This document shows, piece after piece, positions 2,388 to 64,000 of a stretch of DNA of 64,000 nucleotides; within the stretch, counting starts at the first letter, position 1, and every line of letters starts with the position of its first letter. The stretch is from positions 1-64,000 of the IMG/VR virus record IMGVR_UViG_3300026484_000087, one strand, 5' to 3'. The notes under the pieces were generated by a model. That model was not told the DNA's origin, made no database searches, and worked only from the letters and a program-made list of their open reading frames with translations. The translations under genes were made by a program, and so were the position numbers.

Positions 2388-3029
2388 TTATAGAGTACCG
2401 AAATCAACGTTTATAGAGATAGCGTCAACTCTATCATTAAGTTTTTTAACTTCATCTTCAGTATAGTCTTTTAAATCAGTAATCTTATCATCTAATTCAT
2501 CATTTACTGCATTGATTTTAATAGTTAACTTATCTTTAATATCTTTAGTAGCATTAACTGTAGAATATTCAGATACATTAACTGAAACTTGATAAACTTT
2601 AAATTTATCATTTACTTTATCATATACAGCAGTATATAGTTCATCAGCTTGTAAGAAACCATCAAAATTAGAACCAGTTGCATTAGCAGCATCTTTAGCT
2701 GGTAAAGTGTTAAGTTTAATTTTAAAATCACCTACATTTGCATTTGCAGGAGTGAAGAATACTGTTGTACCCTCTACTAAAGTTTCAATGTTATTTTGTG
2801 TAGATGTTCTAACTAAATGTAGTTCATTTTCTGAACCAATATCTTTATAAAAAACTGATTTAGTTGCAATATCAATAGCTTTAGCTAATTGATTGTTATC
2901 ATTAGCATTTAGCTCAACAGATGTACTAATAGCATTTTTAAGCTCGTTTATGATACTATTCATATCCTCAGCAGTTAAAAAACCTTGTTCAGTTGTAACG
3001 TTATTAATTTTTTCAGCAATATTTTTCAT
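2388..3029 (-). CDS. Putative tail-fibre/tail-associated protein
   Basis: N-terminal LTAEDMNSIINELKNAI...DNNQLAKAI resembles tail-fibre N-termini; FTPANAN module; C-terminal DFG motif. Confidence 0.5.
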   Translation of the reverse strand: MKNIAEKINNVTTEQGFLTAEDMNSIINELKNAISTSVELNANDNNQLAKAIDIATKSVFYKDIGSENELHLVRTSTQNNIETLVEGTTVFFTPANANVGDFKIKLNTLPAKDAANATGSNFDGFLQADELYTAVYDKVNDKFKVYQVSVNVSEYSTVNATKDIKDKLTIKINAVNDELDDKITDLKDYTEDEVKKLNDRVDAISINVDFGTL

Positions 3030-3062
3030 TTTTATGTTTCCTTTTATGTTTTAATTTTAAGA

Positions 3063-4031
3063 TTAGTCTTCATTAGATACGAATTTAATCGGTAAGTCTA
3101 ATGGATAATAAGTTTGTTCATTGTTGCCATTATATGGAATATTATCCCCTGTTGGTAACTCTAAGTCCTCATTGAACGGTTCAACATATGTATATGTCCA
3201 TTCACCTCGTTTACTATTGATTGTAGTTCTTACTCTAAGTACATTAGCAACTCCAGCATTAAGATTATCTTTACTTATGTTAAAGAAACATTCAGTAGTA
3301 GTACCACTCTCAACAACCTCTCCTTCTAAAAGAAATTCCCATTCTAAAGTATCTAAACCTTCCATAAATGGTAACGTTACATATAGATCAACATTAGGTG
3401 GAATAAATTTCATTTTTTCATGTAGAACAATTCTATCATCATTAGATAAATAAAAACTAATTGTACCAAATTGACTAATGTCTCCATTAGAACCTTTATA
3501 TGCTGCATGTACATGGCATACTGTATTTTTTGGTAAATATCTATCCATCAAAACGCTAGTAAGATTATCTTTATCATCTATGCTAGCCCATAAGGCTGTA
3601 CCCTCACTATCTTCAACGATCCATGTAGTAGATTCATGAGTAGCATTACCTAAAGTAGAGAACTCATTACCTATGATTTTAAAGTATGCGTTGGGATGTG
3701 AATCTTTTTCATACTTAGTTGTTAAAGTGGGAGCAGTAATAATGCTAGGAATATCCATATTCAATGCTACTTCATTAGCATCTTTAGGGATAAATACATC
3801 AATATTACTCCACTCTGTAAATCCAGTATTTAACAACATTCTAGCTCTACCGTAGTATTTCTTACCTAGATCTAATTTTTCATTGAAAATTATAGTAGTT
3901 AAATTCTCTTCATCGTCCATAGATTTAACAAGGATGTCTTTAAAACTTTCGTCTGTAGACACTTGCCAGTCTGTTTTATCATGTGTCCATCCCGTAGGTA
4001 AATCTGCATTATTAATTCTTAATACAATCAT
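3063..4031 (-). CDS. Virion structural protein with Ig/FN3-like repeats
   Basis: HDKTDWQVSTDESF and HESTTW repeats typical of jumbo-phage Ig-like virion proteins; start moved to ATG 4031 behind a GGAG RBS. Confidence 0.55.
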   Translation of the reverse strand: MIVLRINNADLPTGWTHDKTDWQVSTDESFKDILVKSMDDEENLTTIIFNEKLDLGKKYYGRARMLLNTGFTEWSNIDVFIPKDANEVALNMDIPSIITAPTLTTKYEKDSHPNAYFKIIGNEFSTLGNATHESTTWIVEDSEGTALWASIDDKDNLTSVLMDRYLPKNTVCHVHAAYKGSNGDISQFGTISFYLSNDDRIVLHEKMKFIPPNVDLYVTLPFMEGLDTLEWEFLLEGEVVESGTTTECFFNISKDNLNAGVANVLRVRTTINSKRGEWTYTYVEPFNEDLELPTGDNIPYNGNNEQTYYPLDLPIKFVSNED

Positions 4032-16408: not shown

Positions 16409-17878
16409 TTATACGATTTGACTTAGATTCATAATTTGACTAAAGTCTTCAACAACATTATTGTATGTGTTCTCATCACCAATCATACTTGTATATAAAC
16501 TATTACAAAATGTTGGTAATCTATATACTACTGGTGCTTGACCATTAATACTAACTGCAATAGTAGTATCGCCTAAAACATCTGCATGTATGAATATCTC
16601 TACACCAAGTAAGTTGTTTTTAGTTATAGAGTTAACTACAAGAGCTTTAAATTTACTCATAAATCTTTCTACATACATACTAACGTCAATACCATGTATA
16701 AATGATTTAACATTAGATACGGCATCAACAACTTCACTGTTTGGAGTCATGTTAGTAATACTAAAATCGATACTAGACAACATCTCATCTACAAGTAAAC
16801 TAGAAACAGCTTCACTTATAGTTGTTGCAATTGTTCCCTCAATGCTAGTAGCAGATAAATCTGCTGTTACATCTGTATCTAAAATAGTGGCATTCTGCTT
16901 AAACATTGGAGTATTATTATCAACAAGTATAAGTTTACTCTCAATATCTGGCTGAAGCTTAGCAAGTGCATTTAATGTAAACTCAACCGTTACCAGATCC
17001 CCAGTAATACTACTAAGTGCCTGAACAAGAGGTACTTCAGATAAATTATTCTCATTAAGATCAGAACTTGCCACACCGAATATATCATTACTCGTATGTC
17101 CTATCTCTGCCATATTATTACCAAGTATGAACGAGTTAATCACACTACTAACATGCATTGACCCAACAGAGTTTAATCTTTTACTTTCCAATGGAACAGC
17201 ACCATATAAATTCCTGGTATTATTAATGGGTACATTATTGTTACCCATCATATTATTTACCTCCATACCGCCTGCTACATCTTTAGGACGCATTAATCTA
17301 TGTGTTCTAGTAGTATCTTCAACGCTATAAGATCTATTAAAAGAATCATACAGTACATTGAAACTAGAAAGAACTCTAGTATTAACGATTCCTTGTAAAT
17401 TTACAGTTCTAACAACATTTGTTATACTATTTATATACATAGACATATTTGGGTCTATCCTACCACTCATAGTTGGATCATGGTATTCACTATATCCCTG
17501 AATATAACTAATAGTTAAAGCTTGTGTGTTCGGATCATGCGATTCAACTTCCATAAGGAATCTTAATCTAACTGTACCCCAACCATTAGCAATATTAATT
17601 CTCTCTGTAGGTATATCAGATATTTTCATAAGATCTGGAACGCTGTTTGCTAAAGAAACCGCATTTACTCTACCACCAGTTGCCACTTGCTGACCTATAA
17701 TATTTTCAAGATTATTAAGTGTACCAGAGTTTACATTCATTTCGAATGGTCTACGATAAATATCATTGTATTGTTTTGTTGGCACAAAAAGTATCTTTGT
17801 AATATTTAAGTCTATAGTGTTCATGTATTGCCCAGCATACATATTATTTAAAGAATTTTGTTGGAAATTATTTTGCAT
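16409..17878 (-). CDS. picA: Probable phage-nucleus protein import factor (phiKZ gp69/PicA/Imp1-like)
   Basis: Directly after the gp68-like gene; size and IANGW...RLRF motif fit the family as recalled; no search run. Confidence 0.6.
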   Translation of the reverse strand: MQNNFQQNSLNNMYAGQYMNTIDLNITKILFVPTKQYNDIYRRPFEMNVNSGTLNNLENIIGQQVATGGRVNAVSLANSVPDLMKISDIPTERINIANGWGTVRLRFLMEVESHDPNTQALTISYIQGYSEYHDPTMSGRIDPNMSMYINSITNVVRTVNLQGIVNTRVLSSFNVLYDSFNRSYSVEDTTRTHRLMRPKDVAGGMEVNNMMGNNNVPINNTRNLYGAVPLESKRLNSVGSMHVSSVINSFILGNNMAEIGHTSNDIFGVASSDLNENNLSEVPLVQALSSITGDLVTVEFTLNALAKLQPDIESKLILVDNNTPMFKQNATILDTDVTADLSATSIEGTIATTISEAVSSLLVDEMLSSIDFSITNMTPNSEVVDAVSNVKSFIHGIDVSMYVERFMSKFKALVVNSITKNNLLGVEIFIHADVLGDTTIAVSINGQAPVVYRLPTFCNSLYTSMIGDENTYNNVVEDFSQIMNLSQIV

Positions 17879-57519: not shown

Positions 57520-59133
57520 ATGAATAAGCCGAAATTTAATGGAGGTATTGATCTAACTTCAAATAGACCAGTATCTGTAGCCGACGTTGAAGTAAAAGAA
57601 GAAGGTGCTGTAGTTGAGCCTAAGGTAGCCGATGTAGCTCCTAAAAAAGAGATACAAGAACCAATTAAACAGGAAGAACCTATAGAGGTTGAAAAAGAAA
57701 TAGAGGAAATATTACCTGGTGGACCTATGGTAGATGCTGTAATTATGCCTAGTAGTACATATGAAGATATTTTTAATGCCATGAAAATCATGAATAGTAT
57801 CGACGACGATACGTTTGCTGATGATTTCACAGATAAAGAGTCTTTAGCTGTAGGAATAGTTGCTGATGGTCTTAGAGTAACAGTTAAGCAGAATGCTTTA
57901 GTTAATACTCTAAAAGACAAAGAAGCACAATGGGAACTTGAACCAAAGTATGCAGATAAAGCTTTAACTATCAGAGAACTTGTTGTTGGTAAAAATGCTA
58001 AAGGAGAACTAAAGGGTTCTGCTGCTACAGCTAAGTTTTATAACTACCTTGGACTTGGTGGTATTATACAGGTACCATTATGGCATAGTGGGTTTTGGAT
58101 CTCTTTAAAACCAATTAAAGAATCTGATCTTCTAAACTTGGAGATGTCTATTGCTGACAACCAAATTAGATTAGGTAGGGAAACAAACACTTTAATCTAT
58201 TCTAACTACAGCGTTGTATTTGATAGACTTGTTTTAGAATTTGTTACTAGACATATCCAAAGTTGTTCTTTAGACATTGCTGACATAAATGAGATAACTA
58301 AATATATTAAGATGCAAGATCTTTATCCTTTAGTTAATGGTTTAATTCAATCTATTTATGTTAAAGGTTTTAAAGACGTTAGAACATGTATGAATTCTTT
58401 AAACATAAATCCAGTTACTGGTAAACCTGAATGCGATCATACCATAGAATCCATTATTGATCCTAAGAAATTGTTATGGGTAAATAGAAAAGCTCTAGAT
58501 ACTAACCATATGAAAATAATGGTTAAGCGTGGTCCTAAAACAGTAAGTATAGATGAGGTGCTTGAGTATCAATCTACATTACCTGTAAACAAACCACATA
58601 CGTATACTATACCTACTGAAAATGGTCTAGATATAACAATGACTTTAAAAGCACCTACAATTGATGAACATATTATTAGTGGTGAAACGTGGGTAAACAA
58701 CATTATAGATCTTACTGAAAAATTATTCACTGAGAAACTTAGTGTAGATGAAAAGAACAAGAGAGTTAACGCAAGTAGTAAAATGGTTCTTCTAAGTGCA
58801 TACAATCACTTTATTCAGTCTCTTGGATTACCAGATGGTAGCACTGTTAATGATAAAGAAACAATGGACAATATCTTAGAGATGCTAGTTTCTGATCAAG
58901 TTGCATTTAAAGAGATTCTTAGTAGAGTAAAAGATTATATAGATCTTAACACTATTGCTGTTGTTGGTATTCCTAAATACAGATGTCCAAATTGTGATCT
59001 TAAACAAGGTGATGATAATCTAAATGAGGCATTTAAAGACATTATTCCAATAAATGTACTTGAAGCTTTTTTCGACCTAAGCATTCTCAAAACAAGCAAA
59101 ATTTCAGAAAGAAACCTGGAAGAGAACATCTAG
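57520..59133 (+). CDS. Baseplate-hub/tail assembly chaperone-like protein (phiKZ gp77-like)
   Basis: VPLWHSGFWI, C..C and CPNC zinc motifs, C-terminal IIPIN...FF. Confidence 0.65.
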   Translation: MNKPKFNGGIDLTSNRPVSVADVEVKEEGAVVEPKVADVAPKKEIQEPIKQEEPIEVEKEIEEILPGGPMVDAVIMPSSTYEDIFNAMKIMNSIDDDTFADDFTDKESLAVGIVADGLRVTVKQNALVNTLKDKEAQWELEPKYADKALTIRELVVGKNAKGELKGSAATAKFYNYLGLGGIIQVPLWHSGFWISLKPIKESDLLNLEMSIADNQIRLGRETNTLIYSNYSVVFDRLVLEFVTRHIQSCSLDIADINEITKYIKMQDLYPLVNGLIQSIYVKGFKDVRTCMNSLNINPVTGKPECDHTIESIIDPKKLLWVNRKALDTNHMKIMVKRGPKTVSIDEVLEYQSTLPVNKPHTYTIPTENGLDITMTLKAPTIDEHIISGETWVNNIIDLTEKLFTEKLSVDEKNKRVNASSKMVLLSAYNHFIQSLGLPDGSTVNDKETMDNILEMLVSDQVAFKEILSRVKDYIDLNTIAVVGIPKYRCPNCDLKQGDDNLNEAFKDIIPINVLEAFFDLSILKTSKISERNLEENI

Positions 59134-59582
59134 TAGAACGCAAACTAGAAAGTAACAACCTTGAATATATAGATAACATTATACAAAATATAAGTATAGT
59201 GTTATCTAGCCCTGAGAGTGCTATTCTTTTATCTGACGTTTATGATGACATAAATGGTCTTAAGGGCAATAGTGAAGCCGATAAACTATTCGGCAGCGTT
59301 TTATACAGAGAAGAGGAAGACCTGGTTGTTTGTACTAGATTAGATAGCCTTATAAAGATTTACAGTTCTTACAATATAAGAGAATTCTTTGGACTTAGTC
59401 TAAATGAATTTATGGATTTGCCTGGATGGAAAATAAATAGTCTTACAGAAAATGCAATAGAAATAATGGAAGAAAAAGAAAAAGAATTAGCTGAACTTCA
59501 GGAAGAAGTTGAAAATGATTCATCTAACATAGAAAATAGTATGGAGAGAACAATGTATGATATAGGAGAAACACGTGGATAA
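59064..59582 (+). CDS. phiKZ gp76-like ORF, probably expressed as a frameshift extension of 57520-59133
   Basis: YNIREFFGLSLNEFMDLP motif; first possible start (GTG 59199) has no RBS. Confidence 0.65.
   Translation, partial: SFFRPKHSQNKQNFRKKPGREHLVERKLESNNLEYIDNIIQNISIVLSSPESAILLSDVYDDINGLKGNSEADKLFGSVLYREEEDLVVCTRLDSLIKIYSSYNIREFFGLSLNEFMDLPGWKINSLTENAIEIMEEKEKELAELQEEVENDSSNIENSMERTMYDIGETRG
59067..59073 (+). other. Candidate programmed -1 ribosomal frameshift site T TTT TTC
   Basis: X XXY YYZ heptamer in the correct phase; the -1 frame opens at 59064 and runs without a stop to 59582. Confidence 0.65.
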
Positions 59583-62737: not shown

Positions 62738-64000
62738 TTATTGAAATCTGTTAAAACCTGCAGTAGCATATGGTGTTTGGTAAGAATTACCACCAGCAAA
62801 TGATCTTGCAAAGTCAGCAGATTGTTGACCAATACCTGCACCAGATAAGTAATTACCAATAGCAGCAATAGAACTTTGTTCTGTAAACTGTACTTCTGGA
62901 TCATATCTAGTCTCGAAACCAGCTGAAGCACATGCACTAGATAACGTTTGGATAAATTTACTAGAGAATGTAACTCTTGTAGCTTTACCAGAAATCTCTG
63001 CATTTGGAATAAGCTTGCTGATGATATCAACTTTAGTAATGAATGGATCAATACCAGAAACAGATTGTGGAACATTTGAAAGAGTCCATTTGTTAATGTT
63101 TTCACTAACTTGGTTTGGAGCACTTAATGTAGCAATTGCACTTAAGTCTAGATCTCTAATATCTCTAGATGCACCATCTTTATCTGTCCATGTACCTGTT
63201 GGAATATTAACACCATCATTAAGGAAGATCTCATTAGCTGGGAAATTATGTGGGAATGCCCCATTTGTTAACCATACAGCTGTAGATAAAATCTCTTGAG
63301 CTGCAGCATATTTCTTATCACCAACATCACTGTTAGCTGGAGCAGCAGCAACACCAAAGATTGAAGCAAAGTTACTATATGTACCATAAGCATCGATATC
63401 AATACTGAACATAGCATCTAGCGAATACATTTGTTTAATAAGACTGAATAACTCTTGAGAGTTTAGTTTAGAATCTCTTAAATCTAATGGTTCACCAAAT
63501 CCACTGCTATTATTTTCTAAGTTAGTAGAAATATTCAACTTACCAATATCGTGTAGTTGATCATTTGGTTTTGGAGCAACTGCAGCAAGCCACATATTTG
63601 GTCTAACCATAACAACTGATGAGATGATTGCCAATAAAGCATAACCTGTTGTAGGCATATCTGTATCCATAGATGTTAGAATAACATGTGGTCTAAGTCT
63701 GATCATAGATGTAGAGGCTGCTCCAGGTAATGCTTGAACAGTAAACTCTTCTTGCATAGCATCTACAAAACCTGTAGTTTTACAAACTCTTGTTCTATTG
63801 TTTTGTAGGTTAAGAGACTGAGCAACATTTCTGTTATCAATACTATTTAACTCAATTTGCCAATCAGCTCTAATTGGTTTACCTGCAGCATCCATAATTG
63901 TTGTTGGTAATAAGTTACTATCAATTTTAAGATATGCACCTGGAGCTTCTTTAATAGCTTCACTGATATTTAAATCTCTAAACTCTTTGTTAATTTTACC
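62738..64000 (-). CDS. chmA: Probable chimallin (phage nuclear shell protein), 5'-truncated by the window edge
   Basis: Frame open to 64000; sits upstream of the gp55-like gene as phiKZ gp54 does; D..GKPIRAD and VTFSSKFI..L..A...AG patterns; flexible C-terminal tail; own terminator. Confidence 0.72.
   Translation of the reverse strand, partial: GKINKEFRDLNISEAIKEAPGAYLKIDSNLLPTTIMDAAGKPIRADWQIELNSIDNRNVAQSLNLQNNRTRVCKTTGFVDAMQEEFTVQALPGAASTSMIRLRPHVILTSMDTDMPTTGYALLAIISSVVMVRPNMWLAAVAPKPNDQLHDIGKLNISTNLENNSSGFGEPLDLRDSKLNSQELFSLIKQMYSLDAMFSIDIDAYGTYSNFASIFGVAAAPANSDVGDKKYAAAQEILSTAVWLTNGAFPHNFPANEIFLNDGVNIPTGTWTDKDGASRDIRDLDLSAIATLSAPNQVSENINKWTLSNVPQSVSGIDPFITKVDIISKLIPNAEISGKATRVTFSSKFIQTLSSACASAGFETRYDPEVQFTEQSSIAAIGNYLSGAGIGQQSADFARSFAGGNSYQTPYATAGFNRFQ

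Follow-up and report, generated by a model that had tools for sequence, protein, structure and literature searches.

We identified a conserved −1 frameshift arrangement in a core gene of nucleus-forming jumbo phages, the phiKZ gp77 family, which probably produces a second protein, 150 residues longer, by a programmed −1 slip on a run of T's. In the absence of expression data, a ribosomal slip is favored over a transcriptional one but is not proven. The arrangement is kept in over 80 distant relatives, phiKZ included, and no description of a frameshift in this gene was found in nine literature searches, the "gp77" of the Goslar and PCH45 papers referring to other proteins.

Anatomy of the frameshift locus

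The analyzed window is a stretch of 64,000 nucleotides (29.8% GC) from a 206-kb metagenomic contig, IMG/VR record IMGVR_UViG_3300026484_000087. The first-pass annotation proposed, from the sequence alone, a −1 frameshift fusing two open reading frames (ORFs), and every coordinate of that proposal is confirmed. The locus comprises the following features:

57520..59133 (+), upstream 0-frame ORF of 537 aa, a homologue of phiKZ gp77 (Chimalliviridae core gene cg18); termination here gives the short product
59061..59063 (+), TGA in the −1 frame, which closes that frame 3 nt (59064-66) before the heptamer, so that the −1 ORF opens exactly at the slip site
59067..59073 (+), slippery heptamer T_TTT_TTC, the proposed site of the −1 slip, with the P-site codon TTT at 59068-70 and the A-site codon TTC at 59071-73
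59073..59582 (+), −1 frame extension of 169 codons plus a stop, the C-terminal domain of the long (687-aa) product, homologous to the ORF that contains PHIKZ076.4
59074..59133 (+), stretch that codes in two frames, holding the 19-residue 0-frame tail (DLSILKTSKISERNLEENI) with its stop codon and the start of the −1 extension (RPKHSQNKQ...)
59134..59198 (+), stretch between the 0-frame stop and the first possible start, which an annotation would call intergenic but which evolves as −1-frame coding sequence

The 0-frame codons read CTT GAA GCT TTT TTC GAC (L-E-A-F-F-D), with F517 and F518 at 59068-59073. The −1 frame is open from the TGA at 59061-63 to the TAA at 59580-82, and its first ATG/GTG/TTG is the GTG at 59199, 45 codons after the TGA. 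Slippage would join 518 and 169 residues into a 687-aa fusion (...LEAFF-RPKHSQ...). The arrangement is far beyond chance. Specifically, among 136 in-phase X_XXY_YYZ heptamers (Y = A or T) in long ORFs of the window, the median −1 run-on is 4 codons, the 90th percentile is 16 and the next best is 34, and the probability that 169 codons stay open at the GC content of the window is about 3e-6.

The upstream protein matches phrog_4585 at E 1.3e-79 over residues 27-535, and tblastn finds it in 220 jumbo-phage records. Its AlphaFold2 model (pLDDT 85.5, pTM 0.84, residues 1-69 disordered) matches jumbo-phage homologues in BFVD by Foldseek at E 1e-29 to 1e-18, and cg18 corresponds to phiKZ gp077 and RAY gp267 (PMC10299810) and to 201phi2-1 gp136. 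Consistent with a chimallin-encoding jumbo phage, a nuclear shell protein homologue (phrog_4795, E 1e-35) and two RNA polymerase beta-subunit homologues flank the locus. The extension hits phrog_12109 and phrog_7580, and its AlphaFold2 model (pLDDT 81.5) is all-helical with a long helix at residues 118-167. A search of the phage collection for near-identical DNA gave no match, Pfam gave nothing on the window proteins, and neither profile searches of both parts against PDB sequences nor Foldseek of both models against PDB gave anything significant, so neither part has a solved relative.

The first-pass annotation named the downstream partner as gp76-like. The phiKZ counterpart is instead PHIKZ076.4, an 80-aa ORF on the same strand as gp77, whereas PHIKZ076 lies on the other strand. 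In phiKZ, the −1 ORF matches a profile built from 72 relatives at 99.1% probability (E 4e-19).

Conservation of the T-run and the −1 frame

In 82 of 82 complete, non-duplicate IMG/VR and GenBank relatives (21-43% identity), the −1 frame is open across the 0-frame stop and runs 136-174 aa further, while the +1 frame usually closes within 10 aa. A T5-T9 run sits 24-58 nt before the stop at the aligned Phe-Phe column. The same holds in five closer relatives (L088-L092; L numbers denote relative loci), in phiKZ, 201phi2-1 and RAY, and in the more distant Kwan and CR5, giving extensions of 129-174 aa overall. In AT-rich relatives, the −1 frame likewise opens 0-14 nt before the T-run and never after it. 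Homologues with variable frames and their own RBS/ATG were not seen.

The heptamer T_TTT_TTY/A is in phase in 72 of 82 loci, as T_TTT_TTT in 46, T_TTT_TTC in 25 and T_TTT_TTA in 1. The P-site codon is TTT in 78/78, against about 30 expected from Phe codon usage in the same ORFs, and in the 36 loci with GC of 50% or more, TTT makes up 0.15 of Phe codons elsewhere but 36/36 at the site. In addition, the preceding codon ends in T in 73/78 (22 expected), although its amino acid varies among V, T, L, I, Y, A, S, H and N. Synonymous positions are selected to form the heptamer, even in genomes of 58-59% GC. Ten of 82 loci lack the canonical heptamer (N_TTT_TTT, or T5 runs such as GTT TTT ACC), and several of these have an ATG or TTG upstream of or within the conserved motif of the −1 protein, so that in some lineages the downstream part may start on its own.

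Conserved residues of the −1 protein mostly lie upstream of any possible start codon. Specifically, 64 of 75 loci have no ATG/GTG/TTG between the slip site and the conserved H-V-x4-F-G motif, ten have none before the conserved Y column, and Shine-Dalgarno motifs are mostly absent. In phiKZ, 58 profile-aligned residues precede the annotated ATG of PHIKZ076.4, with no start codon among them. Furthermore, the GTG at 59199 is not conserved, first starts in relatives falling at codons 2, 35, 37, 38 and 113. Among close relatives, synonymous differences in the −1 frame are suppressed in the dual-coding stretch 59074-59133 (pS 0.26 against 0.64-0.71 elsewhere), as expected for dual coding, whereas pN/pS in 59134-59198 is 0.58, similar to the rest of the −1 ORF (0.49-0.69), and the motifs SN[DN]LEYID and H-[VIL]-V are conserved there.

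No in-frame fusion was found among 120 upstream homologues or the top 150 downstream clusters. The 120 upstream homologues are all 309-671 aa, the 671-aa one having an N-terminal extension rather than a fusion. The 1852 clusters matching the downstream profile include, in the top 150, only proteins of 105-186 aa, whose called starts scatter over profile positions 1-57; this fits selection for two products. Two BFVD hits of 686-687 aa (phiEaH2, ctLnO19), not inspected, are probably N-terminally extended, by analogy with Kwan gp51 (672 aa, same frameshift layout).

No shared downstream RNA structure was found family-wide (mean z +0.38), in a 20-sequence set or in the clade of the window (no consensus pairs), pseudoknots not being modeled. 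Only one subclade has a 9-bp hairpin, 9 nt after the heptamer, with some covariation (59.6% of cells paired against 22-40% in slid controls).

Mechanism of the frame change

The comparative data are best explained, with fairly good confidence, by a programmed −1 ribosomal frameshift in a two-product gene. In this model, most ribosomes pass T_TTT_TTC and stop at 59131-33, giving the 537-aa short form, whose last predicted helix starts at the Phe-Phe pair. A fraction slip one base back, tRNA-Phe on UUU and tRNA-Phe on UUC each re-pairing with UUU, and continue with CGA CCT AAG to make the 687-aa long form, in which the terminal helix is replaced by a predicted flexible linker and 140-residue helical domain. 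The downstream domain, having no start of its own, would be made only as this fusion. The minimal feature common to all relatives is a Phe codon preceded by T in phase (T_TTY), so the P-site tRNA-Phe can always re-pair, and most relatives add the tandem A-site slip. That the shift is ribosomal, and its efficiency, are inferred, and U_UUU_UUC is probably not among the most efficient bacterial slip sites.

Transcriptional slippage, in which the RNA polymerase, probably the phage's own multisubunit enzyme, adds one U to some transcripts, would give the same fusion but seems unlikely. The conserved element is a homopolymer of 6-9 T, many relatives have T8 or T9, lengths at which bacterial polymerases are known to slip (Thermus dnaX, IS elements), no ribosomal stimulator is shared across the family, and selection for T at the preceding wobble position would also lengthen the run. 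Moreover, the Phe-Phe pair is itself conserved as protein, which fixes the phase of the T-run, so phase conservation alone cannot separate the two mechanisms. However, the clade of the window conserves only T6 ended by C (the window, L088-L092, L006-L009 and L054), although at 26-34% GC a longer run would cost nothing, and T6 is short for productive polymerase slippage. In addition, the feature common to all loci is the phased T_TTY rather than run length, and the subclade hairpin lies at the spacing typical of ribosomal stimulators.

It is also unlikely that the two ORFs are separate genes, the downstream one being started at a non-canonical codon, at the scattered GTG/TTG/ATG codons or by re-initiation, with the T-run merely encoding a conserved Phe-Phe. 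This is how the genomes are annotated (PHIKZ076.4, 201phi2-1 gp135, RAY gp266, LucasX gp95, Psa21 gp83), some loci without a canonical heptamer (Psa21, L081-L083, L058/59/71) have ATG or TTG before or within the conserved motif, and in 201phi2-1 a TTG overlaps the upstream stop. This reading does not, however, explain why the −1 frame stays open back to the T-run in every locus while stops lie just upstream of it, the selection of the wobble T and TTT against codon bias, the conserved residues upstream of every possible start in 64 of 75 loci, the 113, 87 and 85 start-less codons after the slip site in L089, AgentSmith and phiKZ, or the lack of conserved start positions and Shine-Dalgarno motifs. 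A homopolymer sequencing error or recent decay of a single 687-aa ORF is effectively refuted, although such runs are error-prone and the window is a metagenome assembly, because the same frame break occurs at the same place, with T-runs of different lengths, in over 85 independent assemblies and finished isolate genomes, with no in-frame version among the homologues and clusters examined.

Possible function and relation to known systems

cg18 is still listed as a hypothetical protein, and its downstream partner is annotated inconsistently (80 aa in phiKZ, a 136-nt overlap in RAY, a TTG start in 201phi2-1) and is missing from the published core-gene table (PMC10299810). Recognition of a conserved recoding site would correct the annotation of hundreds of genomes, add a hidden domain of about 150 residues to the core proteome, supply a natural T_TTT_TTY frameshift for hosts from Bacillus to Pseudomonas, and give a handle on an unknown assembly step. 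The likely function, which is less certain than the frameshift, is that of a non-virion assembly factor distantly related to T4 hub-assembly chaperones gp26/gp51, with the short:long ratio set by slip efficiency. More tentatively, the frameshift may be an ancient, essentially universal feature of cg18 across nucleus-forming jumbo phages and their relatives, including Bacillus phage AgentSmith and the Kwan and CR5 groups, and the long isoform an overlooked core protein of Chimalliviridae; cg18 would then be the jumbo-phage counterpart of gp26/gp51, with the ratio controlling hub or tail initiation, linking two chaperone systems so far treated as unrelated.

The recoding mechanism itself is not new. 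As in IS3-family OrfA/OrfAB, T7 gene 10A/10B and HIV-1 gag-pol (U_UUU_UUA), a −1 frameshift on X_XXY_YYZ would fuse an upstream ORF to an overlapping −1 ORF that has no start of its own, and AgentSmith carries exactly T_TTT_TTA, the HIV-1 heptamer. The proteins and their biology are unrelated, and those systems generally have defined stimulators (a pseudoknot, hairpin or internal Shine-Dalgarno sequence), none of which is shared here.

The "tail/baseplate chaperone" label given by the first-pass annotation rests only on weak, sub-threshold similarity to T4 gp26 and gp51, which are listed as hub assembly chaperones (PMC3004832). Foldseek matches the model to T4-like "baseplate hub assembly protein" and "hub subunit" entries in BFVD at E 1.9e-5 to 2.4e-3 (probability 1.0, target-normalized TM 0.45-0.47), two family members hit phrog_150 "baseplate hub", and a CxxC sits near the C-terminus in both the jumbo-phage and the T4 proteins. 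Only 2 of 67 members, and not the window protein, hit PF12322 (T4_baseplate), the best (E 5.2e-5, covering the C-terminal half up to the CxxC) scoring 23.5 bits against a gathering score of 24.5. hhalign of the family profile against gp26, gp51 or a three-sequence alignment of them finds only the CxxC, with probability 23% or less; attempts to collect diverse gp26 relatives from IMG/VR gave only near-identical copies. The jumbo-phage protein is more than twice as long. T4 gene 26 also makes two products, 26 and 26', but these arise by internal in-frame initiation and share a C-terminus.

The inference of the first-pass annotation that the two ORFs form one −1 recoding unit built like lambda G/GT is supported, although the pair is not a member of that family by position, size or fold. 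It does not lie between the tail tube and tape-measure genes, its neighbors in the window and in phiKZ, Psa21, 201phi2-1 and Kwan being RNA polymerase subunits, a helicase, chimallin and small ORFs. The upstream protein is 480-620 aa rather than about 140 aa, its best Foldseek matches to annotated tail assembly chaperones have E 0.14-0.9, and the heptamer is T_TTT_TTY rather than G_GGA_AAG. There are only indirect hints that the products are absent from the virion, in that 201phi2-1 gp135 and gp136 lack the mass spectrometry note that gp138 carries, and Goslar gp81 is not mentioned among the 28 modeled virion proteins. At the level of sequence and comparative evidence, the locus resembles lambda G/GT and P2 E/E+E' (Levin et al. 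1993; Xu, Hendrix & Duda 2004) in having an inferred −1 slip on a canonical heptamer a few codons before the end of the upstream ORF, a downstream ORF with no start of its own that would be made only as a C-terminal extension, two products that would share an N-terminus, and an arrangement conserved across very divergent phages while the sequences diverge.

Genes and candidate frameshift site

To examine the candidate recoding site, we first read the codons and the -1 frame directly from the sequence. In the frame of the upstream ORF the window reads CTT GAA GCT TTT TTC GAC, which places a slippery heptamer in the phase needed for tandem -1 slippage. The relevant features are as follows.

57520-59133: upstream ORF in the 0 frame, 537 aa
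59061-59063: TGA in the -1 frame
59067-59073: heptamer T_TTT_TTC
59199: GTG, the first ATG/GTG/TTG in the -1 frame
59580-59582: TAA in the -1 frame, closing 169 open codons
59565-60273 (+): next gene, 232 aa (phrog_3328, E 3e-39), starting at GTG 59575, with an AGGAGA Shine-Dalgarno sequence at 59565-59570
62738-63895 (-): chimallin (nuclear shell protein) homologue, 385-aa ORF

The predicted fusion is 518 + 169 = 687 aa, and all numbers in the first-pass annotation, which proposed a -1 frameshift fusing the two ORFs, are right. The arrangement is not a chance event: among the 136 in-phase slippery heptamers inside long ORFs of the window (29.8% GC), the median -1 run-on is 4 codons and the second longest is 34, compared with 169 here. 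In most of the window's clade (the window and aligned positions in the related loci L088, L090, L092, L006, L008 and L009), the Leu-Glu codons just before the heptamer (CTT/CTA/TTA GAA) create a TGA or TAG in the -1 frame 3 nt upstream of the slip site, so that any ribosome shifting early terminates at once.

The window comes from a 206-kb IMG/VR contig and belongs to a chimallin-encoding jumbo phage, as a nuclear-shell protein homologue and two RNA polymerase beta-subunit homologues flank the locus. The chimallin homologue matches only positions 283-652 of the 677-position PHROG profile; its N-terminal third must lie beyond 63895, possibly in another frame or past an interruption near the window's end. 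The upstream protein belongs to phrog_4585 (E 1e-79) and has relatives in 220 jumbo-phage records. Its phiKZ homologue is gp77, which in the published core-genome table is cg18 (Goslar gp081, phiKZ gp077, RAY gp267), listed as a hypothetical protein. One 583-aa homologue, labelled 'hypothetical protein [Campylobacter coli]' in NCBI, sits on a 214,766-bp contig and probably represents a jumbo-phage genome deposited within a bacterial assembly.

The downstream -1 ORF matches phrog_12109 and phrog_7580. Although the first-pass annotation called it gp76-like, its phiKZ counterpart is the ORF containing PHIKZ076.4, not PHIKZ076. The phiKZ -1 translation matches the profile of 72 relatives at 99.1% probability (E 4e-19), and the aligned region starts 58 residues before the annotated ATG. 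The Shine-Dalgarno sequence of the next gene lies inside the end of the -1 ORF, and its GTG start lies 8 nt before the -1 ORF's stop. Close relatives all have this 229-237-aa gene but phiKZ does not; there a terminator-like hairpin follows the -1 ORF.

Public annotations treat the two ORFs as separate and place the downstream start inconsistently. In phiKZ (16443-16940 of the locus examined) the downstream ORF is annotated as 80 aa from an internal ATG (PHIKZ076.4); in RAY (2541-3089) gp266 overlaps gp267 by 136 nt; and in 201phi2-1 (2526-2987) gp135 starts at a TTG overlapping the upstream stop. The published Chimalliviridae core-gene table lists cg18 but not the downstream ORF, although the latter is present in every genome examined. 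We found no description of a frameshift in this gene in the open-access papers and preprints searched, which does not exclude a report elsewhere. A canonical -1 frameshift is itself well known; what appears not to have been recognised is its inferred presence in this gene family, a core gene of a much-studied phage family.

Conservation of the site and of the -1 frame

For comparison, we fetched 80 IMG/VR loci using a profile of four upstream proteins, and added three GenBank loci, five closer relatives, and phiKZ, 201phi2-1, RAY, Kwan and CR5 (individual loci carry L numbers). In all 82 complete, non-duplicate loci of the first set, the -1 frame is open across the 0-frame stop and continues 136-174 aa, while the +1 frame usually closes within a few codons. 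A run of 5-9 T lies 24-58 nt before the stop, at the aligned Phe-Phe column. The heptamer is T_TTT_TTT in 46 loci, T_TTT_TTC in 25 and T_TTT_TTA in one (Bacillus phage AgentSmith). In AT-rich genomes the -1 frame opens only 0-14 nt before the run and never after it. phiKZ reads ACT TTT TTT ACT, followed by 255 nt without any start codon, and 201phi2-1, RAY, Kwan and CR5 show the same layout.

Selection acts on the nucleotides and not only on the protein. Specifically, in 78 non-identical loci the P-site codon is TTT in 78, against about 30 expected from Phe codon usage elsewhere in the same ORFs; in the 36 loci with at least 50% GC, TTT makes up 15% of Phe codons elsewhere but 36 of 36 at the site. 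Furthermore, the codon before the Phe pair encodes eleven different amino acids, yet it ends in T in 73 of 78 loci, against 22 expected, which is the signature of a conserved slippery heptamer.

The -1 protein has a conserved H-V-x4-F-G motif soon after the slip site, followed by further conserved columns: Y, G-I, P-L, E-D, and S-x2-E-F-L-x-L-P. In 64 of 75 loci there is no ATG, GTG or TTG between the slip site and the H column, in ten loci there is none before the Y column, and Shine-Dalgarno-like motifs are mostly absent, indicating that in most genomes the downstream part cannot start on its own. Among close relatives of the window (46-68% identity by BLASTP), the sequence after the heptamer translates in the -1 frame to RP[KQV][HYR]SQ..., H[VIL]V, and SN[DN]LEYID, and the first possible start falls at codons 2, 35, 37, 38, 42 or 113. 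The stretch between the 0-frame stop and GTG 59199 has a pN/pS of 0.58, like the rest of the -1 ORF (0.49-0.69), whereas the overlap with the 0-frame tail has depressed synonymous change (pS 0.26), as expected for dual coding.

A profile search of 1.84 billion cluster representatives found 1852 clusters. The best 150 are all 105-186 aa, and their called N-termini scatter over profile positions 1-57, which is what gene callers produce when the true N-terminus lies in another frame. None of these 150 is an in-frame fusion, and none of 120 upstream homologues is fused either. The separated layout is thus maintained, which argues for selection on making both products.

Ten of the 82 loci have lost the canonical heptamer. 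Psa21 (L003), L082, L083 and L063 have N_TTT_TTT with N = A or G, Noxifer (L081) has GAG TTT TTC, L038 and L045 have CTT TTT ATT, and L058, L059 and L071 have GTT TTT followed by TCC, ACC or ATC. Several of these have an ATG or TTG before or inside the conserved N-terminal motif of the -1 protein, so some lineages may have moved from frameshift fusion towards a separately started gene. Even so, every locus keeps a Phe codon preceded by T in phase, and P-site tRNA-Phe can therefore always re-pair in the -1 frame. L086 (2501-4516; upstream homologue P0102), which has a G_TTT_TTT site (GTG TTT TTT) and a 150-residue N-terminal extension, keeps the -1 ORF with 78 start-less codons after the site. 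This family member lacks the C-terminal CxxC, reading IPVTEDQEKSD instead, and the zinc-ribbon-like cysteines are therefore not essential to the family.

Ribosomal slippage and alternative mechanisms

We favour a ribosomal -1 slip as the probable mechanism, because the common element is a phased heptamer rather than a maximal run, and because the window's AT-rich clade conserves only T6, ended by C. In addition, one subclade (L014-L020, L027, L029 and L036) carries a 9-bp hairpin 9 nt downstream of the heptamer (about 9-45 nt after it), for example ACTCAGCG...CGCTGAGT, whose 3' arm contains the 0-frame TGA stop. Compensatory changes between members give partial covariation, with 59.6% of cells paired against 22-40% in slid controls, and the hairpin may be a lineage-specific frameshift stimulator. 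No stimulator was found to be shared by the family or by the window's clade. Lambda G/GT also appears not to need one.

Transcriptional slippage is less likely but is not excluded, as many relatives have T8 or T9, the phase is also fixed by the conserved Phe-Phe, and the base after the run is constrained by the first -1 codon (CGA for Arg or TAC for Tyr). Independent initiation of the downstream ORF, which we consider unlikely, and an artefact, which we consider very unlikely, fit the data poorly.

Predicted structure and comparison with known systems

The upstream protein is predicted to fold confidently (pLDDT 85.5, pTM 0.84), with its first 69 residues disordered and a terminal helix at 513-536 that begins at the Phe pair. 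The long form would therefore replace this helix with a low-confidence linker and an all-helical domain ending in a 50-residue helix (pLDDT 81.5). Neither model significantly matches any PDB structure. Against predicted viral structures, the upstream model matches jumbo-phage homologues first and then T4-like 'baseplate hub assembly protein' and 'hub subunit' entries at E 1.9e-5 to 2.4e-3, whereas annotated tail assembly chaperones appear only at E > 0.1.

Two of 67 family members hit PF12322 (best 23.5 bits, cutoff 24.5), and two hit phrog_150 'baseplate hub'. PF12322 covers both T4 gp26 and gp51, which are listed as hub assembly chaperones (PMC3004832), but direct profile comparison with T4 gp26 and gp51 aligned only the CxxC. 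The 'baseplate chaperone' label of the first-pass annotation is therefore a reasonable lead, not a result. Two hints suggest that the protein is not in the virion: 201phi2-1 gp135 and gp136 lack the mass-spectrometry note that neighbouring gp138 carries, and Goslar gp81 is not mentioned among the modelled virion proteins.

As judged from sequence and comparative evidence, in architecture and logic this is a G/GT-type module, with a near-terminal -1 slip, a downstream domain made only as a fusion, and two products with a common N-terminus. However, it is not a member of the G/GT family, as it is not between the tube and tape-measure genes, the upstream protein is four times too large, and the fold does not match. 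It is a member of the cg18/gp77 family, and its link to T4 gp26/gp51 is suggestive but below threshold.
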